64,000 nt of DNA from Oculina patagonica (lineage: Eukaryota). The notes below the pieces were generated by a model. That model had not been told where the DNA came from. It made no database searches and saw nothing but the letters and a program-made list of their open reading frames with translations. Of the stretch, positions 4,148 through 54,011 are shown one piece after another. Location of the stretch: positions 30,690,001-30,754,000 of the forward strand of contig NC_135758.1 in NCBI RefSeq assembly GCF_052425735.1, in the 5' to 3' direction. The position numbers and the translations under genes are program-made. The stretch's first letter is position 1. Every line of letters begins with the position of its first letter.

Positions 4148-5474
4148 TTTTTGAGTCTAATGCTTGCGTGCGCTTTGCGCATGCGCATTAGACTCTTTGT
4201 TATATGAAAAAAGCTGTTAGCAATCCCAAGGGAATGGTTCGGGATCGATAATCGTTCGCTTTAATGTAGAAAACAATGATCAGCTGCAAGAACGGACTCC
4301 GTACGGACACGCACGATTAGTTTCAATTAAAAACAGCCAATCAGCGACACGTGTTCCCACGCATAATTAAAAGTTCTTTCTCAAGTCACGATTATTCAAC
4401 ACTTGAACAGGACGAAATAATTTTCCAGTTAAGACATTTGTAAGCTTTTTGTGAAAATAAATCTTCGTTTTCAGTTCAGTTAAGCACTTGTGTTTTCGTC
4501 TTGCTTAAAAAGCAAGACGTCTTTGAGAAAAAATATTTCGACGGCGACTCGCGTTTATTTACACAATGCGACCAAATATTTATTTTGTTTTAAAAAATAG
4601 AAAACTTTACCTCGGTTTTTGTATTTAAGTCATTCGAATTTTGACCAATTTTTTCTTTACAGTGCAAACAAAAACCTTCAAAAATAAAAGATGTACATGG
4701 ATAAATGTAAATCAAGTTACGCGACTAAATCAAAATGCGTTTGTTTGGCCGCTTTGCAGTATTACACTGTCCCAGCATTTGCCATACACTGAAATCGAAT
4801 TTCATGCTTTTACGACTCTCAAAGATCTTAAGTTCTTCTTACAGCTAGAAAAATCATAAAATGGTTACATTGATATGGAAGTGATGATTCGCGAAATTTG
4901 TACATCATGATAAACAGTCTTCGCTCCTGTGTATGGTAGCTCGATAATAATTGCCTAGTTTCCAGCGTTCAAAAGGTCATCATTATATTGACGTGAGCAT
5001 TTACACCCGTTTTTAGGAAAATCTGTCACTAAGTGCTTACAGTACAATGGAGTAACAGTCACTATTTCAAGTGCTTTTATTGCAAAATCTGTTTCAAGAG
5101 TCATCATCAAAATGGTGAAAAATCTGAAAGAAAACGATGTGAAGTTCTTCAACCCTTGTTGTAATGAACATGCTTTTTGTAAATCGTCACGCAATCTTGT
5201 CCAAATGTTTAATCGTTTCTGCTTTTACGGACAATACGGAAGAAGTAACATCAACTCCTGTTCATACTTTAAATTTTGTGAAGCATATAACATTTATGAC
5301 TGTTTCGTTTTCATCCATAATCATCCACGATGCCCCTAGCTTGCTATAAGCATTTTAAATTAAACTCCCGAACACAAACCTCTAACCAATTTTAACCGGC
5401 TTACGAAAACCGCGCAATCTGTATCACTATGCCATACGGCATTAGACTCATGTCACCCTTGGTGACCTATTTTT
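4148..5474 (+). mobile_element. Non-autonomous Helentron-type element (HINE/DINE-1-like), copy 1
   Basis: 5' T-run, then subTIR GAGTCTAATGC (4153-4163) with a nearby inverted copy (4185-4195). 3' subTIR GCATTAGACTC (5439-5449), stem-loop GTCACC-CTT-GGTGAC (5452-5466), then CTA and a T-run. No TSD. A homologous copy with the same ends lies at 54154-55491. Confidence 0.8.
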
Positions 5475-6447: not shown

Positions 6448-7362
6448 TTGAGTACTTTTGAATTCTCCCAAATTTTCTCGTGTTTGCACCAGGCTATGTC
6501 GATACGTGCACCACTTTCTATATCTATTCCTTTTATAAAATAAAGCCAACAAAATAAAAGTAGTAGGTAATAACTGTGAGGGAAACGACCTCACAACCAA
6601 TCAGAGGGCGCGTTATGTGGTACAAATTTTATAATGAAATATTAAGTATCTGGGTTCCAACAGGTGATGCAAATATCCAATCAGCGGGCGCGTTATTTGG
6701 TAAAAATATTCAGAGCTATGAAGTCTCTGGTATCCGAACAGGAGACAGTTTATACAAACAAATAGTTACTGATTCTCTTACGAATTATCCCAGAACCACT
6801 TCATGTAAATTACTACCTTTAAATCTCAAATTAGCTGAGGGTAGATTCACATTTTATTATATTCATATAATACCAAAAAATGTTTGGCTAAGGGTACGTC
6901 AATTCACTTTACACAGTATTTTGGTGTGCTATTTTCAAAAGGAAATATTTCCTGTCCCCAACAGGGACAGAGAATATAACCTTATCGTTTATTCATATAC
7001 CGTATTGTATTTCTTACTCAAACTTCTCAAATCGAAACTAATGCAGCACAACACAAAAATAAAATTTTCCATTTTAAAAGAAATGAACAAAAAGAATCAA
7101 ATAATTTTTTTACTTGTATTTTAGGATTTCCTATCTTATTCAAAAATTTTATTTCTATATCTGTGCGTTTTCCTAAATTCCCACGGTATCAATTATCTGA
7201 AGTAATCCTGAATCACTAAAATATTTCGCACGGTTATTTAGCACCTTAATTGAACAGTTATTATAATTTTGAAATAGCTATGTTGGCAACCCCAACGCAT
7301 TTTCTGTTAACCGTAAAAAGAAATGCTTGAAGGGAAAGATAGAGAAAAGGGCTCTTCAAAAA

Positions 7363-7410: not shown

Positions 7411-8846
7411 AAAAATATTTATAGAATTAGGACCGTTGTTTCTCTCCCCACAGTATCAAGCACTCAGAAGTTCAAGCTGGAATATTTTTTTGTTGCTTTG
7501 TTTCTTTCTTTTGTACCGCAACGTATCATTTGAAAAACCACTCCGTCGTTAGATTCTTTATAGATATACATTTGTGTCTTTTTCCTTTTTGAAGATAGTA
7601 GTTTTTGCCAAGCTGTTTTAAAGCTTTTAAGAGGGTCCTGCTCTTAGAATCGCCTGTACATATGCAAGATAAATAAAATCGATTTTCTCAAACTTTGTCA
7701 GGATAAAGACTTATACTTACTTGTTTCAAAAATGTATCTTTGAGATTGTTTCGATTTTTATTTTTTTCGTCGAGACGACTCTTCGGATTTGGCCGCTCGA
7801 AGCGCCAAATTCGGCTCTAAAATACCACTTTTTTCGAAGGCGAGCATAAAAAAATATGATCCGTAGCAGTAAAGGCTGGTACATAGTATTAAAATATCAT
7901 CTTTCAACAGTTATTTAACGCTCTCAGATCCGAATAAAATTTAAATCTGAATTTTTATCAAATTTTCAAAATTATACGCTTCGGCCATGTTGCATCACGC
8001 TTAAATTTAGGTCAACTTCGTGAGCCGAAAAGTCAATCTGGTACATGGATTAGGCTGTCAAAACTATTTTTCTGAATAAAGGTATCACTTCATCTTCGAT
8101 TTTATCCAAAAACTAGATTAGGTAAATAAAACGGAAAAAATCGAGAGCGGCTTGAAAACATGACACTTGAGCTAATTACTTGGCGGTTTGACCTTTCATG
8201 TTGCGATTGTTATCGCACGCATTGATCTAGAAAAGTTCGAATTTGGGTCTTATCCCCCGTCAAATAGTATTTTTAGTCTCCCAAATAGCCGAGAGAATTC
8301 ATTTATTATGTTTCAGAGTCAAAATCAAGCCTCAAATGAGAATCTTTAGCACAAGTTTATTTTGAATTACCTCGCCGTTTGGCGACATCGGACAATGCAC
8401 GCAACGAAAATATCAGTTTATAGATCACAACCGATAAAAATATTTCGTAAAACTCGAAGAATGGATAGTACACTAATTAAATAACATGTTTTCTTACCTC
8501 AACCGAGCGTATTTTGACGAGAAATTGTAGCACGGTTGCTGCCGTTGCTTGTACAAAGCGTTCGTTTGCAAGTTACATATTTTCTTATCACCCGGATGTG
8601 TGACAGCGGTTCGCTACTTCCTGGTATCAAATTTCCCGATATTGCGGTACACGTGTTTGTGGGAACAAATGATATTGCCCTTGGAAAACTGCTGTTGTTG
8701 TCTTGTTTTTAAAATTAACTTCCAACTGTGCTGTGCACACTTTGGGTTGCGAAATACCTAGCTGGAAAACTAGTAGAATTGTGCTTTAATTCACGATCAA
8801 TGGCTTCATGTGGTTTTGCCACACTTGTTGGAGGAGCGTGCGGATC

Positions 8847-9216
8847 CCCAGGGAGGTGGGGTACTCCGGGATCAAAGTGACGGGGATGATCGAATGGAGG
8901 CAAAACTCAGGACCCAAAAAAATCCCTAAGTCTCCCGACATTACCCAAAAAAAAATCCCTGGACCAAAAAAAAAACGAGCAAAAAAATCCCTAGTCAAAT
9001 TACCCCGTAAATTGCCAAGGCCGCGCCAAGGCACTTTAGTTTGATTTTAATACCCAAAAAAATCCCCTATTTAAATCAAGTCACCCAAAAAAATACCTGC
9101 CAAATTCTCCTACCCAAAAAAATCCCGGAATCGAAAATTTCGACCCCCAAAAAAATCCTTCGCACATCCCGCCCCGTCACTTGGATCCCGGAGTACCCCC
9201 CCCCCCCCCTCCTGGG
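8847..9216. mobile_element. MITE nested in the Sola3-like element (8-10 bp TSD, MULE/hAT-like)
   Basis: TIRs CCCAGG..GGGGTACTCCGGGATC.AAGTGACGGGG / CCCCGTCACTT.GATCCCGGAGTACCCC..CCTGGG. TSD (G)TGCGGATC(C) on both sides. Internal CCCAAAAAAATCCC repeats. Confidence 0.85.
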
Positions 9217-9348
9217 TGCGGATCCAGTGCCACTAATCCGGCTAATGTTAAATGTGTCGTTGTGGGAACCTACCGTGTTATTGGAGACTCTCTATTAGAT
9301 TGTGAGGCGAAACTCGTATTCTCTCGAGGAGGTTAGCAGCTTAGTATA

Positions 9349-9865
9349 CCGTATTTACTCGAATAAGCGCCGCGGCGCTTATTTAATTTTTCGCGCTTCA
9401 AGTGCGGCGCTTATTCGAGGGCGGCGCTTATTTGAGGGCGGCGCTTATTTAAAATTTGGACGCCACAAGGAATCTTATATTTTACAGTAATTGAAAATAG
9501 CGTCTTTTGATTGTCAGTATTCGTCTCTTGCTGAAAACAGAAGTGGTGCTAGCTGTCCTGGCAATGTTCGCGACCTTCACAACATATACAGAACTACCAG
9601 AGAACTACATATTGTAAAAATGTTGGATAGAAAACTTATGGGCAAGCGGAAAAACAAAAACATTAAACTGCAAAACATCGCTTTTGATGGAAAGAAATGT
9701 CCCAGTTTGTTTTAGAACTGATTTGTACTGCTGTTTTAGTTAAACGGAATCCCTCGAATAAGCGCCGCACCGGGGCTGCGGCGCTTATTCGGGGGCGGCG
9801 CTTATTAACTTTTTTGTCCCAATTGCGGCGCTTAATCGGGGGGGCGCTTATTCGAGTAAATACGG
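9349..9865. mobile_element. Tc1/mariner-pogo type MITE nested in the Sola3-like element
   Basis: TA TSD. TIR CCGTATTTACTCGAATAAGCGCC. Many internal GGCGCTTATT repeats. Confidence 0.85.
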
Positions 9866-10058
9866 TATGTTTTGTATTTTAAAATAATTGGTCAAATTGT
9901 TTGTGTGATCGTTGACTTTATTTGCGTATTCCAATTATGAACAGCTTAGTTTTAAAAAGAAGATGCATTTAATATCGGGCCTTGTCTAGTTAAGGTCGCT
10001 ATGCACAATCTGATTACAAAATCCCGGTACTGTATCACACATTCTGCATGATCGTCAC

Positions 10059-10089
<31 letters not shown>

Positions 10090-12901
10090 CAAAAAACAAA
10101 AAACAAAAAAACAATCAACCCTGTTCCCAAGGGAGGAAAAAGAGAGAGGCACTGGAAACGAGGCTGGTAAAAATTCAAAAAAATCTTTACGCATTTGGTG
10201 TTTTACAGTTGTCTTTACAGTAGCCTGCGAAGAACGGGGCTATGAAGTTTTTGAATGTGCATTTAGAAAACGAGCGTTTTCCAAATGCACACCCAAAAAC
10301 TACGTAGGTTACTATAAACTACGTTGTCTGGTTTGTCACGCTGGTCGTAGCGGGATCTCATTAACACTAAATTTCCCGCCTTTTTATCTCGTATCCAGAA
10401 ATGAAAGAAATTTTTTAAAACATCCTGCGAAGCGGGTCTGTTGGGAAGGGGTGTGACTTTGAATGGAAACTTCGGTTAAAAAGCTGTAGTATATCAATAT
10501 TTTCTCGCAGGGGTGTTTGATATCGACGAATCTCACCTTAAACTGACTATCGGCGGTATTTTTCTTACAGTTCCTGGTTAGGTATCTATTTGCCCAAGAT
10601 GCCAATTAATTTATTGAGGGCAAAGATAACACAATCGTGTCAGGTGGAAAGAAAAAAGGAAAACTAAACTAAGGATGATTATCATTATAAATATTATCCT
10701 GTGTCGCACCTTTTTAGAGTAAAGAATTGGGGACAAGAAAAGTGACCGAAAGCAAAGAGTTTTTTCATTGTTAAAGCAAAATTTCCACTATAACCAGAAG
10801 TACATGATCTAGAAGTCCACATCTCTGGTAATAGGACTTGTGCTATCGGATTTGCGTGTGTGCTATTTTTAGAACAGGCCTCGCGCGCGAAAATTACGTA
10901 GACGGCTTTTGGCGCGAACTGTCAGACGGTTATAAATTAAAATCAAAATTTAAGAGTAATACGACTGTCAAAACGCTAGAGTTAAATAATGGCCAATGAA
11001 AATAATGTGTTTTCAATTGTTGTATCGCTCGCTTTTCGAAAATATTCCCAAACAATTTTCAGTTAGCAGTTTTAATATCGAAATTCAGAAAACGAGTATT
11101 CCAAACGAGCTTCAAGTCGTGGTTATTTTTGTAGCTCAAGAAAATATTATTGTGTTGATTTAAAGACGTTCAGCAAAGCGAAACATACTTTCTTTAACCA
11201 AAAAATAAATATTTTATTCTACCAATGGTTTCGTTTTCTTTGGTTTTTATTCCCCCTTCGAGCGCGCATAATTTGCCTGTGTAATATTAAATTCAAGGAG
11301 TTTATCACTGTATTGAAACGGAAAGCAACTTTTTCCATCTCTGGTTATCATCGGATGTTTTTCCATCACAGATCTCATAAAATTAGATCGATGCTTCCCC
11401 TTTATTTCGGAGTATTTTTTGAATTTGTTTTTAGTTTTAATTTTTTTTTCTGAGTGAAATGTTTAATGGCAAGGTCACACGGCATTTAGATTATGTACTT
11501 CTGCTATAACTTGCTTTATAGCCTTTAAATTTAGCGTTTTTTTTTAGTCGTTTTTCTTTACACATTGTACAAAACCCGTCCCCCACCTCCCCAGTCTTCA
11601 AGGGGTGCTTGGGTACCCTGTGTCTGTGGTTAATATGTAACTTGATAACATTCGTCGACAGTTTATGGATTTGTAGAATGGACGCATTTACGTTACCACT
11701 TCTCGTCAAAATAGGCTCGATAAAGGTAGGAAAATGTGTAATTAATTTAGTTTACTATCTATTCTTCGATTTTTAAGGAAGATTTACCTCGGTGGTGATT
11801 TATAAACTGATATTTTCATTGCGTGCATTGTCGGACCTCGCCAAACCGCCAGATGTAATTTGCAGAATTTGTAACTCAAAATAAACGTGCTAAGAATGTT
11901 CATTTGAGGCTTATTTTTACTGTAAAATATAATAAATGATTTCGCTCGGTTATTTGGGAGACTAAAAATACTATTTGACGGGGAATAAGACCCAAAGTCG
12001 AACTTTCTAGATCAATCTGTGCGATAACAATCGCAACATGAAAGGTCAAAATGTCAAGTAATTAGCTCAAGTGTCAAGTTTTCAAGCCGCTCTCGATTTT
12101 TTCCGTTTTATTTACCCAGGCTAGTTTTTGGATAAAATCGAAGATGAAGTGATACCTTTATTCAGAGAAATAGTTTTGACAGCCTAATCCATGTACCAGA
12201 TTGACTTTTTGGCTCACGAATTTGACCTAAATTTAAGCGTGATGCAACATGGCCGAAGCGTATAATTTTGAAAATTTGATAAAAATTCAGATTTAAATTT
12301 TATTCGGATCTGAGAGCGTTAAATAACTGTTGAAAGATGATATTTTAATACTATGTACCAGCCTTTGCTGCTACGGATCATATTTTTTATACTCGCCTTC
12401 GAAAAAAGTAGTATTTTAGAGCCGAATTTGGCGCTTCGAGCGGCCAAATCCGAAGAGTCGTCTCGACGAAAAAAATAAAAATCGAAACAATCTCAGAGAT
12501 ACATTTTTGAAACAAGTTAGTAAAAGCCTTTATCCTGACAAAGTTTGAGAAAATCGATTTTATTTATCTTGCATATGTACAGGCGATCCTAAGAGCAGAA
12601 CCCTCTTAAGAGGAGATCTAAAAAGTTATATTTCTTCCTGTCTCCACTTCCGTTCATTTGCATAACAGAAAGCGCAATATATTCCCAAACAACTTAACTA
12701 CAAAAAAATAATCAATGAACAAGTTCCGTTTCACTTGTAGCAACGCCCGTGTACTGAAAGAGGCATGGTCAACATCTAGAGATATTAAAAGATCATGAAC
12801 ACCAAAGGCCCCAGACCACAATCACTGCCAAACCTCTCACAGTGAGTACTTGAACGCTATTTATCAGTTTTTGTGTTGGACAAAGTGATCCTGGCATCAA
12901 G

Positions 12902-17953: not shown

Positions 17954-18915
17954 CTTTTCGCACGAGCGAGATGAACATGAATATGCAAAAGAAAAACAAA
18001 GCGTGGAGCGAGGCAAAAAAATACATATAACAATGTAAAATATAAAAGCCAATGAAAGCACCAATAAAACTTGAATTCTTCGGCGTCTAGCATCCGTTAA
18101 AAGTTTCACCTTATTTCTTAATTTCCTACGACGGTTTGCCTCGAGAAAATAAGAAATAAGAAAGATAACTAGACACAGCTTTCGCCATTCAACCATGTTT
18201 ACATTTAGCGGATCAATAATAAGGGGTATCACGAACTACTTTTAATTCTGACATCATCCAAAGGCTAATCAGAGAACTAACTGTAATTAACTGCGTTGAT
18301 GTGACCGCAACGTCGACTGGAACCACTAACTACAGTTAAGTATGACGTCATGTAACTTGAGACTAACCAGAGGTAAACTGTAGTTACGGCGTAGATGCGA
18401 CCACGGCCAATGTCTCACGGAAATGTGTTTTGCACGGTTTCTGACTAGCGCTAGTAGTATGGGGCGTTACCGTAGGGCGCACTTAATATTCAAAATGGTG
18501 GCCGATCTCAACGAATATAAAATAATAGTAAAAAACGAGCTTGAAAATTTAAAAAGGAAACGCGTCATAGGGAAATGTAGGGGGATATGTAAGGCTAGAA
18601 AAAAAAAAGACAGATGCGAACAGGTGTAACAGGTTTGCGTTGTAACTCTCAACTATCATAAAATAAGTTTAAAAACGGCGTTCAATATCACCTGAAAAGA
18701 AAAAAGACATGGCGCGGGGCCAGGACGAAAAAAATATGGTTTTATTTTTAAAAATGGAGTGACGTCATACCGTTTGGCAAGAACTAAATACCGTCACAAA
18801 GTAAAACGTGTTTACCCGAACAAGTTTTGTCAGGTTTGGTTTAAAACCTTATAAGACATACAAACGCACACACGCACACACATACACTCAGTTCAGATAA
18901 CCAAAGCAGTGAAAG

Positions 18916-19518
18916 ATGGTTCCAAACAGTCAAGTCGATATCAGTTCGAAACCTCTGTTGACAGTGGATGAAGTGGAAAAAGTCAAGCGTCAAAAGGTGG
19001 ATGGTTTCATTAGCCATGTCTTTCAGTTGACGTTTGCTGCCATGTTTGACACGCTGATCAATGAAGAGAAGGTGAAGCATTGCAATGGATGCGCTATTCA
19101 ACACCCTAGTCAGAGACAACACTCCTGTCTCATGATGGAGAACGAAGAGGCCTGGATGTATTACCCGGCGATAACGTGCTGGAGAGAATTGGTGCAGAAA
19201 ACGGCCGAATGTGTGTGCAGTGCTCTTGGCATTAAGCTAGGAACTTCCTGGAAAGCCTACGTCACTGAATTGCCAAAGTTCCCTTGGACAAGTATTTATC
19301 TGACCGCCCTGGAGCTTTCCCAAGGCCAGGATCTCGAAAGTCGTATCTTGTATGCCCTTTTTTATGGTCCAAATGGATTGAAATCGAAGGATTATGACTG
19401 TGATGTAGAAATGGACCCACTTGAAGTGGAATGCCCCGAGAACATTGTCAGAAAAGAAGAGGAACCAATGGACCTTGACATTGTAATTAACCACATACAA
19501 AACAAGCTTTTTATATAG
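18916..19518 (+). CDS. Maverick terminal Cys/His protein, left-arm copy (200 aa, local indels)
   Basis: Inverted copy of 22265-22876 with CNGCAIQHPSQRQHSC. TATA-like TTATAAG at ~18849 and AATAAA at ~19522. Confidence 0.65.
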   Translation: MVPNSQVDISSKPLLTVDEVEKVKRQKVDGFISHVFQLTFAAMFDTLINEEKVKHCNGCAIQHPSQRQHSCLMMENEEAWMYYPAITCWRELVQKTAECVCSALGIKLGTSWKAYVTELPKFPWTSIYLTALELSQGQDLESRILYALFYGPNGLKSKDYDCDVEMDPLEVECPENIVRKEEEPMDLDIVINHIQNKLFI

Positions 19519-19626
19519 AACAATAAAATATACATTTGATTTTATTTTATCTGTGTCTTGTTTTAAAGGGTACGAAGTGTCAAACAGTTTTACAAACGTT
19601 TTTCATAACAACATCAACTAAACAAG

Positions 19627-19944
19627 TCATTGCAAGTCCTGCTTCTCCTCTCTCGTTCGGTATAATGCAGTTTTAAAATTGTCCTCTCGCGCTTGTATAA
19701 TTTCCTCGCTGAGTTTGAGATTTTCCTCTTTCAGAGCAGTGTTTTCTTTTTTCACTTTTTCCAACTGATGTCGCAATTCTTTGAGTCGCTGATTCCATTC
19801 ACTGTTTATATTCTCTTTATAGTCTTCCATCTTGCGCTCCACTTGCTCGGCTAATTCTTGGTGTTCTTGATGGTGTCTTTCTAAAAACTCCAATCTTCGT
19901 TTTCTAAGGCGTTCTTCCAAATTTCTTTCTTCCCTCCAGTGCAT
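19627..19944 (-). pseudogene. Maverick coiled-coil ORF, left-arm copy (5' part deleted)
   Basis: Inverted copy of 21791-22156 lacking ~35 bp around the start. Confidence 0.6.
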
Positions 19945-20101
19945 GACAATATTAGTACGACTGACACAGAATGATAGTTTAACCTCGTTTTATTACATAT
20001 TCAAATGATAAGTGATTGGTTACAGATTACATCATCAGTCAAACACACTATTACAAGGTCCTTCTGGAATGTCTATGCCTTGTTTCTTTCTCTCTTGTCG
20101 T

Positions 20102-20599
20102 TCATATTAATACAAAGTCTATATCTTCATCCTCTAGCCCTTTGACTTCATAAAAGAAAAAGCGGTGACTCCAACTAAGGTTGAGTATTTTGATGTAACT
20201 TTGGCGGTTTTCTTCAGAGTTGTCAAAGAGTCTCAAGATAAAGCCGTCATCAATATGGTCCTCGTAGACACCTCCCTTAAATGCTTGATCCTTTTCAACC
20301 AGGAAGTGGTAAATTTTTCGTACGTTTCTAAGGTCCACATTGTTGATGCCATCTGCCATGAACACGCTTAATTTTTTGTTGTACTCCATCCATTCTTGGG
20401 ACGTTACTGTAGCACTGTGGGGAAAGTGTAGGCGTAGAGTGCGGAAGAGGCTTCTGAGAAAAGCTGTAAAGAAGAGTCTGTAGCTTGTTGAAGACAGGAT
20501 CAGGCTCGTAGCTTCGTTCATTCTGTTCATGATGACACGCTGATGTGTAACTGACAACCTTGGCATGATCCTCGGGTTTTGTTTATAATCCAAGTCCAT
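20102..20599 (-). pseudogene. Maverick 188-aa ORF, left-arm copy (frameshifted C-terminus)
   Basis: Inverted copy of 21147-21713 truncated by small deletions near 20105. Confidence 0.6.
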
Positions 20600-20800
20600 A
20601 TTTGGTTTGCATGATCCTTTGAATAAGGGCTTCAGACCACGTTTTCTTTTTTCCTTTAACTTTAAGCGCGTTGATCATTTTTTTGTCTGCAGCCCACTTT
20701 TTCTTCTTGTTCCCTTTAGCATCCCTGTAAGCTATGTCGTGTTGCTTGCAGATTTCATCGAGTTCGTTGATTCCCTTGTCTCCTCGAGCCAGTCTTTTAT
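20583..20800 (-). pseudogene. PLA2 ORF, left-arm copy truncated at the fold-back point
   Basis: Retains NELDEICKQHDIAY but lacks the YCGP loop. Confidence 0.65.
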
Positions 20801-21163
20801 GCAAAAAAATATCTTATCGTTTCTCAAGCGGGTGGTGGTTTCGATTTTCACGGTTTTGTTCAACGCAAGTTTAAACCCCGAGAATGGCACTTTTGGAACC
20901 CCATGGATGGCAAATACAACTATTGTGGTCCATTTACAAAACTGGATAAAAGACTGGCTCGAGGAGACAAGGGAATCAACGAACTCGATGAAATCTGCAA
21001 GCAACACGACATAGCTTACAGGGATGCTAAAGGGAACAAGAAGAAAAAGTGGGCTGCCGACAAAAAAATGATCGACGCGCTTAAAGTTAAAGGAAAAAAG
21101 AAAACGTGGTCTGAAGCCCTAATTCAAAGGATCATGCAAACCAAATATGGACTTGGATTATAA
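20801..21163 (+). CDS. Parvovirus VP1u-type phospholipase A2 protein (adintovirus PLA2X-like), probably 5'-truncated
   Basis: The frame is open across the spacer: AKKYLIVSQAGGGFDFHG...EWHFWNPMDGKYNYCGPFTKLDKRL...INELDEICKQHDIAY...AD. This has the YxGP Ca-loop and the catalytic HDxxY..D. First ATG is at 20903. Confidence 0.85.
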   Translation, partial: AKKYLIVSQAGGGFDFHGFVQRKFKPREWHFWNPMDGKYNYCGPFTKLDKRLARGDKGINELDEICKQHDIAYRDAKGNKKKKWAADKKMIDALKVKGKKKTWSEALIQRIMQTKYGLGL

Positions 21164-21713
21164 ACAAAACCCGAGGATCATGCCAAGGTTGTCAGTTACA
21201 CATCAGCGTGTCATCATGAACAGAATGAACGAAGCTACGAGCCTGATCCTGTCTTCAACAAGCTACAGACTCTTCTTTACAGCTTTTCTCAGAAGCCTCT
21301 TCCTCACTCTACGCCTACACTTTCCCCACAGTGCTACAGTAACGTCCCAAGAATGGATGGAGTACAACAAAAAATTAAGCGTGTTCATGGCAGATGGCAT
21401 CAACAATGTGGACCTTAGAAACGTACGAAAAATTTACCACTTCCTGGTTGAAAAGGATCAAGCATTTAAGGGAGGTGTCTACGAGGACCATATTGATGAC
21501 GGCTTTATCTTGAGACTCTTTGACAACTCTGAAGAAAACCGCCAAAGTTACATCAAAATACTCAACCTTAGTTGGAGTCACCGCTTTTTCTTTTATGAAG
21601 TCAAAGGGCTAGAGGATGAAGATATAGACTTTGTATTAAGTATTGAACGACAAGAGAGAAAGAAACAAGGTATAGACATTCCAGAAGGACCTTGTAATAG
21701 TGTGTTTGACTGA
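21147..21713 (+). CDS. Maverick accessory protein, unknown function (188 aa)
   Basis: Intact ORF overlapping the PLA2 stop by 17 nt (virus-like packing). Confidence 0.65.
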   Translation: MDLDYKQNPRIMPRLSVTHQRVIMNRMNEATSLILSSTSYRLFFTAFLRSLFLTLRLHFPHSATVTSQEWMEYNKKLSVFMADGINNVDLRNVRKIYHFLVEKDQAFKGGVYEDHIDDGFILRLFDNSEENRQSYIKILNLSWSHRFFFYEVKGLEDEDIDFVLSIERQERKKQGIDIPEGPCNSVFD

Positions 21714-21790
21714 TGATGTAATCTGTAACCAATCACTTATCATTTGAATATGTAATAAAACGAGGTTAAGCTATCATTCTGTGTCAGTCT

Positions 21791-22156
21791 TTGATCATTT
21801 GTAAAATGACTAGTTGCGGAGAAAGTACTAATATTGTCATACACTGGAGGGAAGAAAGAAATTTGGAAGAACGCCTTAGAAAACGAAGATTGGAGTTTTT
21901 AGAAAGACACCATCAAGAATACCAAGAATTAGCCGAGCAAGTGGAGCGCAAGATGGAAGACTATAAAGAGAATATAAACAGTGAATGGAATCAGCGACTC
22001 AAAGAATTGCGACATCAGTTGGAAAAAGTGAAAAAAGAAAACACTGCTCTGAAAGAGGAAAATCTCAAACTCAGCGAGGAAATTATACAAGCGCGAGAGG
22101 ACAATTTTAAAACTGCATTATACCGAACGAGAGAGGAGAAGCAGGACTTGCAATGA
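21791..22156 (+). CDS. Maverick accessory coiled-coil / leucine-zipper-like protein (~116-121 aa)
   Basis: E/K/R-rich heptads (LKELRHQLEKVKKENTALKEENLKLSEEI). ATG at 21806. AATAAA at ~22237. Confidence 0.65.
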   Translation: MIICKMTSCGESTNIVIHWREERNLEERLRKRRLEFLERHHQEYQELAEQVERKMEDYKENINSEWNQRLKELRHQLEKVKKENTALKEENLKLSEEIIQAREDNFKTALYRTREEKQDLQ

Positions 22157-22264
22157 CTTGTTTAGTTGATGTTGTTATGAAAAACGTTTGTAAAACTGTT
22201 TGACACTTCGTACCCTTTAAAACAAGACACAGATAAAATAAAATCAAATGTATATTTTATTGTT

Positions 22265-22876
22265 CTATATAAAAAGCTTGTTTTGTATGTGGTTAATTAC
22301 AATGTCAAGGTCCATTGGTTCCTCTTCTTTTCTGACAATGTTCTCGGGGCATTCCACTTCAAGTGGGTCCATTTCTACATCACAATCATAATCCTTCGAT
22401 TTCAATCCATTTGGACCATAAAAAAGGGCATACAAGATACGACTTTCGAGATCCTGGCCTTGGGAAAGCTCCAGGGCGGTCAGATAAATACTTGTCCAAG
22501 GGAACTTTGGCAATTCAGTGACGTAGGCTTTCCAGGAAGTTCCTAGCTTAATGCCAAGAGCACTGCACACACATTCGGCCGTTTTCTGCACCACATTGAG
22601 GTCAATTCTCTCCAGCACGTTATCGCGGTAATACATCCAGGCCTCTTCGTTCTCCATCATGAGACAGGAGTGTTGTCTCTGACTAGGGTGTTGAATAGCG
22701 CATCCATTGCAATGCTTCACCTTCTCTTCATTGATCAGCGTGTCAAACATGGCAGCAAACGTCAACTGAAAGACATGGCTAATGAAACCATCCACCTTTT
22801 GACGCTTGACTTTTTCCACTTCATCCACTGTCAACAGAGGTTTCGAACTGATATCGACTTGACTGTTTGGAACCAT
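22265..22876 (-). CDS. Maverick terminal Cys/His (putative Zn-binding) protein, 203 aa
   Basis: CxxC-x3-HPSQRQHxC motif and an acidic C-terminus. Transcribed inward from the terminus, with TATA-like and AATAAA signals. Confidence 0.7.
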   Translation of the reverse strand: MVPNSQVDISSKPLLTVDEVEKVKRQKVDGFISHVFQLTFAAMFDTLINEEKVKHCNGCAIQHPSQRQHSCLMMENEEAWMYYRDNVLERIDLNVVQKTAECVCSALGIKLGTSWKAYVTELPKFPWTSIYLTALELSQGQDLESRILYALFYGPNGLKSKDYDCDVEMDPLEVECPENIVRKEEEPMDLDIVINHIQNKLFI

Positions 22877-23543
22877 CTTTCACTGCTTTGGTTATCTGAA
22901 CTGAGTGTATGTGTGTGCGTGTGTGCGTTTGTATGTCTTATAAGGTTTTAAACCAAACCTGACAAAACTTGTTCGGGTAAACACGTTTTACTTTGTGACG
23001 GTATTTAGTTCTTGCCAAACGGTATGACGTCACTCCATTTTTAAAAATAAAACCATATTTTTTTCGTCCTGGCCCCGCGCCATGTCTTTTTTCTTTTCAG
23101 GTGATATTGAACGCCGTTTTTAAACTTATTTTATGATAGTTGAGAGTTACAACGCAAACCTGTTACACCTGTTCGCATCCGTCTTTTTTTTCTATCCTTA
23201 CATATCCCCCTACATTGACGCGTTTCCTTTTTAAATTTTCAAGCTCGTTTTTTACTATTATTTTATATTCGTACGTTGAGATCGGCCACCATTTTGAATA
23301 TTAAGTGCGCCCTACGGTAACTCCCCATACTACTAGCGCTGAAACAGTTTCTAACGTATTTTCTCTCATTCGTTAAAAAAGAACGCGTGGAGGGATAGAC
23401 ACAGATGATGGCTCTTCACAAGACCCCTTTATGTTACTCGTGCTGGTCTAACACCATATACACGGCCAGACCTGTCGCAGTGAGAACTTGAACCGGCGTT
23501 ATTTATCATTTCTTGTGTTGAACGAAGTGATCCTGGAATCAAG

Positions 23544-25178
23544 ATGAGCTCTAACAATACAGATCGAGCTACGAACGCTTCAAGCCAGGTGGTCCAGGTG
23601 CTGTCTTATTTTTTTTGCCCAGTTAAACCAATACATATTTGGGGTTTTAACGAAAGAACCGCGTTCAAGATTAATGCCGCCATAACACTCATTATTTGCC
23701 CTGTCGCAATTTTTCTAAACATCTTAGTAATCTTAGTAGTGAAACTGAGAAGAAAGTTAAAAGAACACAACTCGAACATTCTGCTGGCGAGCTTAGCTGT
23801 AGCGGATGTTCTAATGGGCGCTGTCTCCATGCCGCTGGCTATCTGTTCGGATTTGTTTATTCTTCTCAAGCGGTATATGACTCCGGATATCTTTGGCAGA
23901 ATAGCTTTCGTAAATGATCTGACACTGTACGTCGGAGGTTGCTCGTCTACGTATCATCTAGCTGTGATTGCTTGGGAGAGGTACGTGGCGGTAACCAAGT
24001 GGACAAAGTACAAAGTCCTCGTCACCAGAGGCCGTGTCAAGAAGTATGCTGGAATTGCATGGCTTGCAACTGTGTTTTTAGTGATTCCATCACAAGTAAT
24101 GAAGCTCGCTGGTGTCCAGTACAAATACCTTGTGGTCATTAACATGGTTTCTTCTCTCCCTGGGGTTGTGTGCATAATACTAGTCGGCTATTTCTACCTA
24201 CGGGTTTACCTTTGTGTGCGCAGACGGAACATTAACTCGATAAGCGAAGTCCGTTCTCTCATCAAAGACAAGCTCGCCACCAAAGTCGCCAAAACGACTG
24301 CCATACTGACAGCTGCTGTGTTAATTTTCTTCATTCCATCGTCACTCTACGTGTTATTTGGAGACGCATATCCTGCACTTCGTAAAAGTTCGTTTTTCCG
24401 TTTGTCGATGATGATGGCTCACCTCAACTCTGTTATCAACCCTGTTCTTTATTGCTACAGGGACCGCCGCTATAGAAAAGCGATGCTAGAGATGTTAACG
24501 ATGAAGAAGACTACAGCCGGTGCAAAGAAAAACGTCAGACAAATTGGATCTGCCCAGTCAGTGGAAGATGTCTCGGAGAACAACCACATACGAAGATCAC
24601 GAATTCAAAGCTGCGGTTCGATTCCAAACCTGAGAGACACTGATCAGCGGAGGACTCATGGGCAAGTGAAGCGCGAAAGACGTACTTCAGCTCCATCGCG
24701 TGAAACAAACAGAATGATATGTGTCGATATACATCAACCTGAGATCATCACGACAAAACCAGGAATACAAGTTCAGAGCGGTCTGATAAGAAATGGAACC
24801 CTAAGTTATCATGAAGACACCAGCGATAAGCCTCGTGCTTCAATGATCCAGGCACCATTTCAGCCTCATTCCTCAAGCCTTCCACCTGACGGGTCCCGAC
24901 ACCATTACCGTGAAATGGTACGATCAAAGTCCTTGGATGAACGTCCATTATTTCAGATAATCGGCAGCCACTACAAATCACGGCAGGAAGCGATACGAAG
25001 ACCAAAGATAGTGTCATCCAAATTTAAAATCGGTGTGACACGAAAAGGAAGCCAAAGACATCTTAAAGGAAGCCTTGGTCACCTCGAAGACACCTGCGAT
25101 CAGCCTCAAGGCCTGAGTTTCCAGGCATTACTTCATCTTCAGTCCTCAAGCCTTCAACCTGAAGGTACCCGACATTAA
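23544..25178 (+). CDS. Orphan class A GPCR, subfamily A copy 2 (544 aa)
   Basis: 7TM with LAVAD, WERY, NPVLY. The tail ends at a small insertion (GACATTAATTATTACC). Confidence 0.92.
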   Translation: MSSNNTDRATNASSQVVQVLSYFFCPVKPIHIWGFNERTAFKINAAITLIICPVAIFLNILVILVVKLRRKLKEHNSNILLASLAVADVLMGAVSMPLAICSDLFILLKRYMTPDIFGRIAFVNDLTLYVGGCSSTYHLAVIAWERYVAVTKWTKYKVLVTRGRVKKYAGIAWLATVFLVIPSQVMKLAGVQYKYLVVINMVSSLPGVVCIILVGYFYLRVYLCVRRRNINSISEVRSLIKDKLATKVAKTTAILTAAVLIFFIPSSLYVLFGDAYPALRKSSFFRLSMMMAHLNSVINPVLYCYRDRRYRKAMLEMLTMKKTTAGAKKNVRQIGSAQSVEDVSENNHIRRSRIQSCGSIPNLRDTDQRRTHGQVKRERRTSAPSRETNRMICVDIHQPEIITTKPGIQVQSGLIRNGTLSYHEDTSDKPRASMIQAPFQPHSSSLPPDGSRHHYREMVRSKSLDERPLFQIIGSHYKSRQEAIRRPKIVSSKFKIGVTRKGSQRHLKGSLGHLEDTCDQPQGLSFQALLHLQSSSLQPEGTRH

Positions 25179-27540: not shown

Positions 27541-27809
27541 GTAAATAATAAAGATGGTAAATTTTAAGCTCGGTGATAAATAGTGAAGAAATTATTCAAC
27601 ATGACACGAGCGTGGGACAAAGAAAAAATCTGAGTCCCCGACGGGAATCGAACCCATGGCCTCCTAGATACCGGTTGGGCGCTCTAACCAACTGTAGCTC
27701 AGTTGGTTAGAGCGCCCAACCGGTATCTGGGAGGCCATGGGTTCGATTCCCGTCGGGGACTCAGATTTTTTCTTTGTCCCACGCTCGTGTCATGTTGAAT
27801 AATTTCTTC
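27541..27809 (-). mobile_element. tRNA-derived SINE-like insert with head-to-head inverted duplication
   Basis: 13-bp direct repeats ACTGTTCATGATA (27528-27540, 27810-27822). 113-bp inverted arms (27582-27694 / 27700-27812, 1 mismatch). Pol III A box TAGCTCAGTTGG and B box GGTTCGATTCC. Confidence 0.8.
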
Positions 27810-50450: not shown

Positions 50451-50627
50451 GTAAGTGGAGAAGAGTGGTGCTTCTTGGAACTTCAAAGACGTTATCAAGG
50501 CAAGCAAGAGAGGAATAAAAGGAAGCCAACTGACGTTGTCGCAAACTGATGTAATCCCTTGAGCGTAGAAAAGAGGAAACGACCGCTCAAGTAACGTGAG
50601 TAAAATAATCAGAAAGAACAGAAATTG

Positions 50628-53600
50628 ATGAAGTCTGTTAAGAGAGTCTTAAAGAGAAGTTTTCATCCGAGATATAATTTAAGAAGTAGAAGGCTAGCCA
50701 GTCAAACCGTTAAAGCCAGTACGCCTAAAGTCGATACATCTGTTCAAGCCGATTTATCGGAAGAAGATATTTGTGAACTGCTCCACGAATTACCATTTTG
50801 TCCATATACTGGTCTAGTACCGCCACACCAAGCGCACATTGAAAGTTACATTGAATCACATACCGAAGAGTCGAGAAGAATTTCCACAGCATTCTCCTGT
50901 CCAGGTCCAGCCTATAGAACCAACGGAGAAGCAATAGATATCAGTGTTGACCAGAACGAAGGACCATCCATTGTTCAATCGAATTCACCTGTTCAGCATA
51001 TTTTCCGTAGCCCGCGTGAAGCAAGTGAGAGCAGTTCTTTGGAAGATTTTACGCCGATCGAGTCAAGGCAGTTGCAGAGTGGTCCACGCATCGCTTTAGA
51101 AGACGAAAAGATCAGCGAACTCAGCGAAAAAGAAGCAAACAAACCGAATCAACGCCAAGGAACAAGCTTCGCTGGCCAAACAAAACCGATAATTAATTCA
51201 CAAGCAAGTATTCACGACCAAGTGCGAACTCACATAAATTACAAAAAGCCAAACCATAACAAAAGAAGACATCGCAGGGAATCTACTTCCAGCAACGAAC
51301 CAGAAGAAAAAAACTCAAAAGATTACAAAACAGATAGTGAAAGGAAAGAGGATTCCGAAATGAGTGACGAGAGATTCAGTGAAACCGAACCAAACTTCGC
51401 CAAGAGAATCCAGAAACAAGGACCAACAGTAAATATGGATCCACATCTTATTCAAACATTGACAGAAGCTTTACAAAAAATTGGGCAGCAACAACAGACG
51501 TCAATAGTCGTTCCAGAATCTATAAAAATTCAACCATTTCGTGGTTTGGATGGAGATGACGTGGTAGAATGGTTCGAAGTTTTTGAGAATCGCTTGAAAC
51601 GACGAAGCATTGCCCTGGACAGCGAAAGCGCGCTAACAGAATTAGTGCTTCATTTAGCCGGACCAGCAAAAGATTTTTATAGTGATTTGACTGCCGAAGA
51701 GAAGGCGACGCTCGAGAACGTGAAACGAATAATGATAGAACATTACTCAAGCAAGGATCATGGCTATGGTCACCGGGAATACCTGTTGAATCGCCGCCAA
51801 TCGCCAAATGAAAGTCTTGATCACTACCTCATCGATATTTGCTCTAAATTTCGCCGCCTTGGTTTAACCAACAAAGAAAAGATGGCATATTTCTTACAAG
51901 GGCTACGTTCCGATATTCGCCAGCTCGTGTACATGAAAGAACCAAAAACATTTGCGGAAGCAGAAAAGGCCGCTCGATTTGCAGAATCCATCTCTCGCGG
52001 GCCTCATCCCATTACACCTGGTATCTCAACAGAACACGAGTTAATCACGAAACTACTGAACCAAAAGCCCACTAAAGACGAAAGCAGTGCTTCGGCCAGT
52101 CTTGATGCTCTAATTGATGGACTAACAGCGAAGACAGGGGAAGAACAGGTACAATCCCTTGTTAAGAAGCTTAACGGGTTAATAGATAAAGCCACAAGTC
52201 GCCCAATCAGTCAAAGCCAGGAAGCAAAAACCGTGAGTCTTGCTGCATATACGGAGCCTAGCAACAGAGAAACCCCAGATTTCATACGAGAAATTCGCCG
52301 AATTGATAGCAAATTGGAAGAACTTTGCCGTGAAATGGACGCCAGAATAGATGCTCTTATCGCAGCAGATCCATATGACAATTTCAGAGATGGAAACACA
52401 TCTCGCATAGCCGCGTTTTCTGAAACTACGAGAAATGGGGCACCAGAGTTTACTGAAGAAATTCGCCGTATGGAAAAAAGTTTCACCAACAAATTAGAAA
52501 GTCTGTACCGACGAGTAGACAACCGAATAAATAGCCTTGCCCACAGAAACCAAATCACTCGCCCCGAGCTAGCAGAAAACAGAGAACGCAGCCGACAGTC
52601 TAAACCCGTGTGTTACAAGTGTGGACGCGTGGGCCATATTCAGTACAACTGTTACTATTATCACCCAGACGACCAAGATCAAGAAGTGAGACATGAACAC
52701 CGCGCACATTATAGTCCAGCCGAAAATCATCAGTCGAGACCTCATAGCTCAGCACGTTTACTCGCACTAGATGCTCAGTACGCCCATCGCGTTCACGAAT
52801 ATCATAAGAAGGCAGAGAGTCCAGGACAAGAAGTGGAAACGTCCCGTCCGCCAGTACGCACCTGCAGTCTTAATTTTAAAGGAGGAAACTCATCAGATCA
52901 TGTAATAGCCGCCCTGCCTAAGAAAGAAAACACAAACAGCCAGGAAGCAGATGTGAATATCCCAAGTTCAAATCAGAAAGTGAAGCTGGCGGTAACCAAT
53001 CAGCGGCAAAGTCAAATTATGCCAAAGCAAGGACAGTCCTACAAGAGAAATCGCCGAGAAATGAAGTCATCAGTGCAGCAAAGCAATGTCTTTCTGTCAC
53101 GTAGAAGTGATGCCAAACTTACGTCCCCTGACCTGACTACCGTAGGCAAAATAGCAGGCCAAGCCGTTCAGTTACTTGTGGACACTGGAGCATGTGTATC
53201 AGCCATTGACAAACAGTTTTTCACAAAGATTTATGGTCAGTTTCCGCCTAAGATGAGTGACTGTTCCTTATCGTCAATTCAGGCAGTCGGTGGAGGCACA
53301 GTACAAGTGCTAGGGAAGATAACCGTCCCTTTACAGTTAAATGGTTGTGAGTATCCCTGCGACTTCTATGTTATGCAGAATCTTACCTGTGATGCCATCC
53401 TTGGTAGAGATTTTCTCCAAGCAAACAAAGCCTTGATTGACCTGGACAACAGCAGCATTACCTTCAAGAAAACCGGGCATGCTGGGAAACCCACCAGTGC
53501 AACTACATTGCGGCCAGTTATGAGAACTTGCCTTCCCCAGCAGCACAAGTTGAAAGAAAACAACACCGTAGCCACACATGTTGAGACGAGTATTGAGTCC

Positions 53601-54011
53601 AATTGCCAATTAATTCCTCAAAGCAGAAAGATCAAAGCACTGAGATTTCAGCAGCCACTCTTAGTTTTGATGCTCATTATACTGTACCTGCTCACAGCCT
53701 CATGCACGCCGCACACGATAGACAACGCCAAGCCTGTTATTCAGAACATGCCAAAGTTTTTCGTCCACAGAACCCCAGATGATAAAGTTGAAGATGGCCA
53801 AGCGAATCGCGAGGGAACTGCTCAAAGTTTAGTCCCAAAAGAAGAAAAAGGAGAGAGGATAAAAGTATTACAGTCACGTGATGCCCAGAAAACATTGAAG
53901 ACTGACTATTCGAGCCCGCCAACAGTACTCAGCGACTTAGAAGAAGATGCTACGAAAGATGTCTTTGATACTATGAGAGCACACCTTGGAATTGAAGAAT
54001 CATGTTATTGA
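50628..54011 (+). CDS. gag-pro: Gag-aspartic protease polyprotein with a C-terminal hydrophobic segment (~1127 aa)
   Basis: Retrotransposon capsid motifs (PFRGLDGDDVVEWF, LHLAGPAKDFY, RQSPNESLDHY, FLQGL), CCHC knuckle CYKCGRVGHIQYNC, and protease LVDTGA..ILGRDFL. Confidence 0.92.
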   Translation: MKSVKRVLKRSFHPRYNLRSRRLASQTVKASTPKVDTSVQADLSEEDICELLHELPFCPYTGLVPPHQAHIESYIESHTEESRRISTAFSCPGPAYRTNGEAIDISVDQNEGPSIVQSNSPVQHIFRSPREASESSSLEDFTPIESRQLQSGPRIALEDEKISELSEKEANKPNQRQGTSFAGQTKPIINSQASIHDQVRTHINYKKPNHNKRRHRRESTSSNEPEEKNSKDYKTDSERKEDSEMSDERFSETEPNFAKRIQKQGPTVNMDPHLIQTLTEALQKIGQQQQTSIVVPESIKIQPFRGLDGDDVVEWFEVFENRLKRRSIALDSESALTELVLHLAGPAKDFYSDLTAEEKATLENVKRIMIEHYSSKDHGYGHREYLLNRRQSPNESLDHYLIDICSKFRRLGLTNKEKMAYFLQGLRSDIRQLVYMKEPKTFAEAEKAARFAESISRGPHPITPGISTEHELITKLLNQKPTKDESSASASLDALIDGLTAKTGEEQVQSLVKKLNGLIDKATSRPISQSQEAKTVSLAAYTEPSNRETPDFIREIRRIDSKLEELCREMDARIDALIAADPYDNFRDGNTSRIAAFSETTRNGAPEFTEEIRRMEKSFTNKLESLYRRVDNRINSLAHRNQITRPELAENRERSRQSKPVCYKCGRVGHIQYNCYYYHPDDQDQEVRHEHRAHYSPAENHQSRPHSSARLLALDAQYAHRVHEYHKKAESPGQEVETSRPPVRTCSLNFKGGNSSDHVIAALPKKENTNSQEADVNIPSSNQKVKLAVTNQRQSQIMPKQGQSYKRNRREMKSSVQQSNVFLSRRSDAKLTSPDLTTVGKIAGQAVQLLVDTGACVSAIDKQFFTKIYGQFPPKMSDCSLSSIQAVGGGTVQVLGKITVPLQLNGCEYPCDFYVMQNLTCDAILGRDFLQANKALIDLDNSSITFKKTGHAGKPTSATTLRPVMRTCLPQQHKLKENNTVATHVETSIESNCQLIPQSRKIKALRFQQPLLVLMLIILYLLTASCTPHTIDNAKPVIQNMPKFFVHRTPDDKVEDGQANREGTAQSLVPKEEKGERIKVLQSRDAQKTLKTDYSSPPTVLSDLEEDATKDVFDTMRAHLGIEESCY

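Follow-up and report, generated by a model that had tools for sequence, protein, structure and literature searches.

A palindromic, non-autonomous Maverick derivative, possibly formed by copy-back of one genome end

A 4,882-bp element at positions 18453 to 23334 of a 64,000-nucleotide window (the whole stretch of DNA that was analyzed) consists of the same end twice, in inverted orientation, around a short unpaired center that is colinear with one arm. Homology to full-length relatives classifies this insert as a non-autonomous Maverick/Polinton derivative, apparently made up of the last ~2.5 kb at the end that carries a PLA2 gene, joined to an inverted copy of that end's own first 2.35 kb. 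The best explanation, unproven and with a probability that we place near 0.55, is that a defective Maverick derivative was generated by replicative copy-back of the PLA2-side end and then integrated.

Insertion site and palindromic architecture

The limits of the element, which begins with AGTAGT and ends with ACTACT, were defined by its repeats, its junctions, and a set of empty sites. AGCGCT|AGTAGTATGGGG spans the left junction and CCCCATACTACT|AGCGCT the right one, placing the two 6-bp copies of AGCGCT at positions 18447 to 18452 and 23335 to 23340. Because AGCGCT is itself palindromic, taken alone it could merely extend the inverted repeat. This was ruled out by five empty paralogous units in the window (near 17.06k, 29.60k, 36.22k, 45.85k, and 61.65k), in all of which a lone AGCACT joins the two flanks directly; because these paralogues hold one copy, the element is a genuine insertion that duplicated 6 bp of its target. 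Junctions and paralogues thus agree with a preliminary description of this DNA, which had reported AGTAGT/ACTACT ends and a 6-bp duplication in host sequence that is continuous at paralogous sites. A receptor gene adjoins the 4.9-kb insertion.

A repeat search and self-BLAST paired positions 18453 to 20803 with 23334 to 20943 in inverted orientation. Read from the terminus inward, the left arm spans 2,351 nt (18453 to 20803, plus strand) and the right arm 2,392 nt (20943 to 23334, minus strand), the inverted arms together making up 97% of the element. Between them lies an unpaired spacer of 139 nt (20804 to 20942, plus strand), colinear both with the right arm and with three unfolded relatives (L007, L023, and L024). 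The two inverted arms of ~2.35 kb had been recognized previously, with a spacer given as 145 bp, slightly longer than the one measured here. In a global alignment the arms match at 2,327 positions and differ by 13 substitutions and, in addition, 8 indel events; identity in aligned columns is 99.44%, and the largest indels reach 35 nt. Seven of the 13 substitutions were derived on the left arm and four on the right, and divergence accumulated on both arms after the palindrome had formed. The identity profile showed no step near the termini. Chance pairing of the arms was ruled out by the near-perfect 2.35-kb inverted repeat and by the absence of the arm sequence elsewhere in the window.

The fold junction falls within PLA2 and shows no more than ~4 nt of microhomology. 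It represents a non-homologous point of the parent sequence, a signature that end-joining would leave just as a template switch would.

Genes in the arms and their Maverick relatives

Four open reading frames were found in each arm, as had been claimed. The first, ORF1, is open over 200 codons in the left arm (18916 to 19518, plus strand), where two indels relative to the right copy enclose a short out-of-frame stretch, and has 203 codons in the right arm (22265 to 22876, minus strand), the length seen in its homologues. With 210 homologues, 95% identity to P0001, and a position as the first gene inward of the terminus in L001, L009, L010, and L025, ORF1 belongs to an accessory gene family that is conserved near the termini of coral-type Mavericks. 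It had no match in Pfam or PHROG, and a 44-sequence profile had none among PDB sequences. An AlphaFold2 model was helical (mean pLDDT, 66), and Foldseek searches of this model against PDB and BFVD returned nothing at an E value of ≤0.001.

ORF2 encodes a predicted coiled-coil protein, broken by one deletion in the left arm (19627 to 19983, minus strand) and listed at 121 codons in the right (21791 to 22156, plus strand), with the first ATG as the sixth codon. It is 79% identical to its counterpart in L001 and 73% identical to that in L004; no Pfam family exceeded the threshold, only coiled-coil-type matches falling below it. ORF3 is broken by two one-base indels in the left arm (20038 to 20599, minus strand) and has 188 codons in the right (21147 to 21713, plus strand), equal in length and 97% identical to P0121. 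It overlaps the PLA2 stop by 17 nt. An exhaustive HMMER search of 1.84 billion proteins found four representatives homologous to ORF3 and a word index found five, and the only Pfam match was to DUF6508 at a sub-threshold score, marking ORF3 as a lineage-restricted orphan. A 19-nt motif, characteristic of the borders between modules in this Maverick lineage, occurs once in the window, between the 3' end of ORF3 and the start of ORF2 (21777 to 21795, minus strand).

The assignment of the fourth gene to PLA2 held up, the right copy (20801 to 21163, plus strand) matching the parvovirus-VP1-type domain PF08398 with an E value of 8e-15. Its frame is open for 120 codons, with the native start and approximately the first 23 of 143 codons missing. 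The left copy (20583 to 20804, minus strand) is 5'-truncated at the fold, lacking the calcium-loop region and retaining the HD motif. Both copies are thus without the 5' end of the 143-codon gene known from relatives, in keeping with the earlier claim that the fold cuts through PLA2.

The Maverick affiliation proposed in the preliminary description was borne out by a full-length relative of 21,014 bp from a coral-type assembly (L001:9669 to L006:11034), which shares its termini and all four ORFs with the insert. This element is present in two 100%-identical copies with different flanks, and the L001/L005 target duplication is CCTGTT. It encodes an open 1,328-codon pPolB (PF03175; E = 2.4e-30), an rve+chromo integrase (present in relatives L003, L006, and L025), an AAA_22 ATPase (E = 2.9e-06), a faint adenain-like match (E = 0.03), and candidate capsid-module proteins of 468 and 333 residues that matched nothing in Pfam. 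Identity to the insert is 91% over 46 nt at the terminus, 81% at the DNA level across ORF1 and ORF2, and 90% across ORF3 and PLA2; compared with L001, L004, L006, L009, and L010, the insert termini are 84 to 91% identical over 46 nt. Arm positions 1 to 46 and 315 to 1557 match the left end in L001, while positions 1540 to 2531 match the right end in L006. The expectation that terminal repeats of full elements are short and non-coding also proved correct in this relative, which has a repeat of ~156 aligned nt built from 38-nt tandem units. The insert has the 6-bp duplication, AG...CT inverted termini, and continuity with an autonomous element expected of a Maverick/Polinton. No homologues of pPolB, the integrase, the ATPase, or capsid-module genes were detected anywhere in the window, and because pPolB is missing there and present in the 21-kb relative, the window copy represents a non-autonomous derivative rather than an autonomous member. 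A parvovirus or densovirus origin, hinted at by the 4.9-kb size and the PLA2 gene, was ruled out, since both its termini and its ORFs place the insert with a pPolB/integrase element.

The three unfolded relatives, 97 to 98% identical to the window, run past the fold point into the full 143-codon PLA2 gene, then two ORFs of ~198 and 148 codons, and further on an ATPase, a protease-like gene, and the end of a putative capsid gene, all colinear with the full-length element. L023, for example, shares 97% identity with the window and keeps colinearity with L006 for 4.2 kb. Because these relatives are unfolded and both window copies of PLA2 lack 5' ends, the fold does not mark the natural edge of a repeat. 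Gene-bearing terminal repeats of at least 2.35 kb, which the preliminary description had said would reduce the insert to a simple internal deletion, are therefore not the native state of the lineage to which these 97 to 98% identical contigs belong.

The outer 1.5 kb of each arm, containing ORF1 and ORF2, matches the end opposite PLA2 and ORF3 in the closest full-length element, implying that the parent end differed from that of this element. That parent end was either recombinant or bore genes in a longer repeat of ~1.5 kb. Terminus-proximal content varies across the lineage (repeats only, ORF1, or ORF1 plus ORF2), and in L009 and L010, ORF1 adjoins ORF3, an order that makes a differing parent end plausible, short of proof. 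The earlier view of the palindrome as one viral end was correct in that an end is duplicated, and too simple in that the outer 1.5 kb matches the opposite end and module order varies.

A second two-armed, non-autonomous relative, of the kind that the preliminary description had suggested searching for, was found in another genome (L004:2273-10904) with its own duplication, AATTTC. Its 2.3-kb arms carry ORF3, PLA2, and ORF2. The 2-kb center is unrelated to any Maverick sequence compared, and L004 is therefore not a simple snap-back.

Routes to a palindromic element

Under the copy-back explanation, a protein-primed, strand-displacing polymerase would have been copying a linear Maverick genome from the PLA2-side end. 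After ~2.53 kb it would have left the template, restarted 139 nt upstream of that point along its path, on the strand being displaced or newly made, and then copied back out to the terminus. Complementary synthesis would have produced a 4.9-kb duplex with the same valid terminus at both ends, which the integrase of an autonomous Maverick in the same nucleus could have inserted, creating the 6-bp duplication. The copy, encoding nothing needed for its own propagation, would later have decayed. All five ORF-disrupting indels fall in one arm, which counts against this explanation, as do the lack of relatives among IMG/VR viral contigs, the placement of ORF1 and ORF2 opposite PLA2 and ORF3 in the closest full-length element, and the unrelated center of L004. 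The recurrence of a two-armed architecture in L004 speaks for it.

Palindromic one-end derivatives are known from other protein-primed replicons. Esteban et al. reportedly described them in 1997 for phi29 in vitro, Daniell is said to have found them in 1976 in adenovirus incomplete particles, and Kikuchi et al. reportedly described them in 1985 for the yeast pGKL linear plasmids. Non-autonomous Polintons are also already known, and with both precedents in hand, the earlier suggestion of an unrecognized class was overstated. Snap-back or copy-back genomes are a recognized class of defective viral genomes (PMC13506859), and phi29 polymerase switches strands in vitro, according to work cited in PMC5910420.

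The palindrome could instead have formed in situ, by break repair inside a longer and perhaps full-length Maverick that had integrated first. A broken end would invade the opposite inverted terminal repeat, copy inward for ~2.35 kb, and then be end-joined to the other broken end, leaving an internal deletion with extended repeats and with the original termini and duplication kept. This route, which we consider a serious contender though on balance unlikely, gives the same product (a single 6-bp duplication, the two termini, and an inner junction that lacks homology beyond ~4 nt at most) and does not call for an aberrant molecule to be packaged or integrated; had the parent repeat held ORF1 and ORF2, 1.5 kb of inverted homology would have been available for invasion. 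Internally deleted DNA transposons usually come from abortive gap repair, which also favors repair in place. Against it, L004 is two-armed too, at another site and in another genome with its own duplication, pointing to an architecture that is recurrent or mobile. If the outermost left end were original and the rest copied, in-situ repair further predicts a near-terminal step in arm identity; none was seen, although identical parental repeats would mask such a step.

A parent with natural gene-bearing repeats of at least 2.4 kb, from which the window copy arose by simple internal deletion between the repeats, would fit the variable terminus-proximal content of the lineage and the gene-bearing 2.3-kb arms of L004. 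It is improbable, as both deletion end points would have had to hit PLA2 at mirror positions 139 nt apart, near-identical relatives have a single-copy PLA2 at the virion module end, and PLA2 and ORF3 lie at one end only in the full-length relative. Even less probable is an assembly or sequencing artefact, either a chimeric read folded back on itself or the collapse of a longer element: palindromic chimeric reads are known from some library types (PMC13265396), but here the host sequence continues correctly on either side of a perfect 6-bp duplication whose site five paralogues show empty, the arms have diverged by 13 substitutions, with derived states on each, and by indels as long as 35 nt, and collapse of an inverted repeat would not yield a 139-nt spacer that is asymmetric and joined without homology. 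A foldback-type cut-and-paste transposon with no relation to Mavericks beyond resemblance would likewise show long inverted arms and a short duplication, and is scarcely credible given a terminus and four ORFs in common with pPolB/rve integrase elements.

Comparison with known elements

The insert resembles Mavericks/Polintons in its 6-bp duplication, AGTAGT...ACTACT termini, and terminal inverted repeats, and its full-length relatives likewise carry pPolB, rve+chromo integrase, ATPase, and putative capsid-module genes. It differs in lacking these hallmark genes and in having gene-containing inverted repeats of 2.35 kb. Vertebrate Mavericks have an (AGT)2//(ACT)2 end motif and 6-bp duplications, and intact copies have repeats of 46 to 1,447 bp with a mean of 402 bp (PMC8097293), whereas the host here is apparently a cnidarian of scleractinian type. 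Alpha adintoviruses with PLA2X (PMC8502044) also place a parvovirus-VP1-type PLA2 gene beside the virion module of a pPolB/integrase element; unlike them, the insert lineage has the orphan ORF3 as a separate overlapping gene after PLA2, and because the PLA2 domain reaches residue 138 of 143, a pX-like C-terminal domain would seem to have no room.

Free-ended viral genomes would be expected of an alpha adintovirus, and no free viral contig of the insert lineage was found in IMG/VR. Searches of IMG/VR with the conserved terminal 19-mer (zero matches), the ORF1 profile, and PLA2 returned no relatives, a result whose strength is limited by cnidarian virome coverage. Eight matches to the 19-mer in JGI metagenomes were dismissed as isolated chance hits, none of them close to a Maverick protein. 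Ten window ORFs, two of them crossing the fold, had no exact counterpart in the protein collection, from which the window's own genome is absent. In the literature, we found no relevant description of a palindromic, foldback, or snap-back Maverick/Polinton.

The snap-back genomes of phi29 (mini-genomes), adenovirus, and pGKL share with the insert the inverted doubling of an end, two identical origins, and a short unpaired center. They are seen extrachromosomally, whereas the insert is chromosomal with a target duplication and a replicative origin that is our interpretation. We know of no direct observation of Maverick/Polinton replication or movement, and protein-primed replication of a linear intermediate has been deduced from gene content. 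The insert combines a clean integrase-type duplication with the same anatomy as the products of strand switching in protein-primed replicons. If its origin was replicative, it would be descriptive evidence that the lineage at some stage replicates as a free linear molecule, that the integrase accepts in trans any duplex with two correct termini, and that defective genomes enter the germ line. If it formed by repair in situ, it would be an ordinary internally rearranged transposon copy.

More tentatively, the window copy and L004 could be independent members of a recurrent, propagating group of cnidarian Maverick satellites, made by strand switching and copied and integrated by helpers through their two valid ends, a possibility that we consider doubtful. 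Such satellites would be the first chromosomal fossils of an extrachromosomal, linear, strand-displacing stage of Maverick replication. For genome surveys, the search image is two inverted copies of one Maverick end, folded within a gene and flanked by their own duplication. The insert described here keeps both termini around an inner junction with microhomology, and the length of its duplication fits an rve integrase.

Insertion site and gene content

Window positions 18453 to 23334 are a genuine insertion, 4882 bp long and bounded by a 6-bp target duplication. A repeat search and self-BLAST paired 18453 to 20803 with 23334 to 20943 in inverted orientation around an unpaired middle of 139 nt (20804 to 20942), which is the right arm carried on inward. 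The two inverted arms of ~2.35 kb named in the preliminary description were recovered (2351 and 2392 nt), but its 145-bp spacer was not. Global alignment of the arms gave 2327 matches, 13 substitutions, and 8 indel events, or 99.44% identity over aligned columns. The insert starts with AGTAGT, ends with ACTACT, and is flanked on each side by the hexamer AGCGCT. Because this hexamer is itself palindromic, the site was compared with its paralogues elsewhere in the gene cluster, and at five of these (~17.06k, 29.60k, 36.22k, 45.85k, and 61.65k) the flanks joined directly at a single AGCACT, bearing out the earlier proposal of an insertion with these ends and a 6-bp duplication. The right flank (region of 23341 to 23345) lacks 5 nt (AATTG) present after the target site in all five empty paralogues.

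An intronless open reading frame for a rhodopsin-type receptor (23544 to 25178; PF00001) has the insertion ~200 bp upstream of it and belongs to a cluster in which such genes occupy both strands. This cluster (12902 to 61107) contains at least nine ORFs matching PF00001, in two length classes, and is made of diverged repeat units of roughly 6 to 10 kb each. A tRNA gene (27688 to 27759; Rfam RF00005, 41.5 bits) sits amid the receptor genes, and a 1128-codon ORF at 50625 to 54011, with a retroviral-type aspartyl protease domain, is probably part of an LTR retrotransposon.

Each arm carries the same four ORFs, as first described. In order from the terminus inward, these are ORF1 (203 codons in the right-arm copy), ORF2 (~116 to 121 codons, coiled-coil-like), ORF3 (188 codons), and a parvovirus-VP1-type phospholipase A2 (PLA2; PF08398, E = 8e-15). 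The PLA2 gene is indeed cut by the fold: its 5′ end is missing in both arms, with the greater loss in the left arm, and the truncation points are the inner bounds of the arms. Right-arm copies of ORF1, ORF2, and ORF3 are open and have the lengths found in relatives. Of the left-arm copies, ORF1 carries two indels yet remains open, ORF2 has one deletion, and ORF3 has two one-base indels, so that all five indels within these genes disrupt left-arm copies; with so few events, this bias may be chance. The PLA2 domain extends to the end of its protein, and the gene overlaps ORF3 by 17 nt in a different frame, both in the insert (21147 to 21163) and in L007 (356 to 1337), an unfolded contig nearly identical to the insert. 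Adintovirus PLA2X proteins are reported with a pX-like tail, whose place ORF3 occupies here. No homologue of polymerase, integrase, ATPase, or capsid-module genes was found within the whole window, and the insert is therefore non-autonomous. Non-autonomous Polintons are known.

Maverick relatives and the composition of the arm

Among 210 ORF1 homologues, two matches carried source names, both from the coral Desmophyllum pertusum, and many of the rest trace to ENA assemblies, Tara coral metagenomes among them. Two loci, L001 (reached via an 83%-identical ORF1 homologue) and L006 (via ORF3), overlap on one 1.26-Mb contig and form a 21,014-bp element that starts with AGTAGT and ends with ACTACT, its terminus 91% identical to that of the insert over 46 nt. 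The element opens with ORF1, ORF2, a GRF zinc-finger gene, a protein-primed polymerase (open, 1328 codons; PF03175, E = 2.4e−30), and an rve-plus-chromo integrase; next come proteins of 333, 150, and 468 residues and one of 194 residues that faintly matches adenain, and an AAA ATPase, two more ORFs, PLA2, and ORF3 complete it. Over 11 kb, L005 matches this element at 100% identity yet has a different flank; this second copy is evidence that the lineage was recently active in the relative's genome. The full-length element on ctg20904 has CCTGTT as its left flank (L001, 9663 to 9668) and CCGGTC as its own right flank (L006, 11035 to 11040). CCTGTT instead borders, on the right, its identical copy on ctg20392 (L005, 11035 to 11040), a mismatch that reflects either an assembler swap between identical copies or recombination of the copies.

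Vertebrate Mavericks have AGTAGT/ACTACT end motifs, 6-bp duplications, and repeats of 46 to 1447 bp (PMC8097293), and Alpha adintoviruses carry PLA2 genes beside the virion module (PMC8502044). With the same end motif and duplication length as vertebrate Mavericks, a PLA2 gene, and termini and genes in common with the full-length element, the insert is, on sequence comparison, a Maverick/Polinton derivative. The Maverick origin originally suggested for it thus holds, with a relative that encodes both protein-primed polymerase and integrase.

ORF1 is again the first gene from the terminus in a more distant coral Maverick (L025); it lies near an integrase gene in L003, L011, and L025, and immediately upstream of it in L003 and L025. 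In D. pertusum (GCA_029204205.1, MU825914.1; L002, 10028 to 20580), each of four tandem ~2.78-kb units pairs an ORF1 homologue with a homologue of the integrase, some integrase copies aligning piecewise, in what appears to be a Maverick terminal segment amplified head to tail.

The preliminary description derived both arms from one viral end, a picture too simple for the full-length relative, in which the outer and inner parts of the arm match opposite ends. With 81% identity, arm positions 1 to 1557 (terminus, ORF1, and ORF2) align to the polymerase-side end, in L001; positions 1540 to 2531 (ORF3 and PLA2) align with 90% identity to the opposite end, in L006, oriented as they should be when read inward from that terminus. 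These matches overlap within a 19-nt motif (window 21777 to 21795) located directly after the ORF3 poly(A)-like signal and directly before the ORF2 start. The motif is conserved at every near-terminal gene-module border in this Maverick lineage: between ORF3 and the subterminal repeats in L005/L006 (10395 to 10413), between ORF1 and ORF3 in two Tara coral metagenome insertions (L009, 4545 to 4563; L010, 4570 to 4588), and at two places per arm in L004, a second two-armed element (2701 to 2719, 4239 to 4257, 6975 to 6993, and 10496 to 10514). Content between terminus and motif accordingly varies among repeats only, ORF1, or ORF1 plus ORF2. The Logan contig L023 terminates within the motif, which may be both a common regulatory element and a module-exchange hotspot. 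The simplest reading is that the PLA2-side end of a putative parent ran terminus-ORF1-ORF2-motif. Such an end could be a gene-bearing repeat that was longer, at ~1.5 kb, or the product of a previous exchange at the motif.

Origin of the palindrome

Judged from alignments with relatives, the fold is not a natural repeat boundary. The two ends of the full-length element align over only ~156 nt and are tandem arrays of a 38-nt unit, one with 2.9 copies and the other with 13.8; PLA2 and ORF3 lie at just one end. Three short-read contigs (L007, L023, and L024), 97 to 98% identical to the window, continue unfolded past the fold, with PLA2 complete at 143 codons. Ahead of this gene, L023 encodes ORFs of 198 and 148 codons, an ATPase, a protease-like gene, and the end of a capsid gene, colinear with the full-length element for 4.2 kb. 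Short ends, one-sided PLA2 and ORF3, and contigs that pass the fold all make it improbable that a natural repeat of at least 2.4 kb simply suffered an internal deletion. At the junction itself, the final base of the left arm abuts parent sequence 139 nt deeper, with at most ~4 nt shared.

Protein-primed replicons are known to give palindromic defective genomes, with specific palindromic products from phi29, adenovirus, and pGKL plasmids. The sequence directly establishes the anatomy, junction, termini, and duplication, and we infer a replicative origin followed by integration in trans as the best explanation, with a probability of roughly 0.55. During strand-displacing, protein-primed replication from the PLA2-side end, the polymerase would have switched strand, yielding a 4.9-kb duplex with two identical termini that a helper integrase would then have inserted into host DNA. 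Strand switching is documented for phi29 polymerase in work cited in PMC5910420, and snap-back genomes are a recognized class (PMC13506859). No account of a Maverick with palindromic or snap-back form turned up in a text search of the literature. The main rival, which is less likely but would leave the same sequence at this one locus, is that a longer copy integrated here, then broke and was mended with its opposite inverted end as template, end-joining completing the repair. An assembly artefact is very unlikely, given correct flanks, a target duplication, and derived substitutions on both arms (seven on the left and four on the right). That the insert is an unrelated foldback transposon is scarcely credible beside a Maverick relative with the same termini and genes.

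A second two-armed element

The assembly with the full-length relative also contains L004 (2273 to 10904), which ends in the family termini and is flanked by a duplication of its own, AATTTC. Its ~2.3-kb arms are 99.5 to 99.8% identical and carry ORF3, PLA2, and ORF2, and the element is without hallmark genes. This architecture indicates that two-armed derivatives of one end recur in this Maverick lineage. A simple snap-back was rejected for L004, whose 2.05-kb center had no match among the Maverick sequences compared and contains a DEAD-helicase fragment. Inside ORF3 of one L004 arm lies a nested insertion of ~2 kb (8112 to 10084), itself palindromic, with ~900-nt arms 94% identical around a 186-nt center; it looks like an unrelated foldback-type element.
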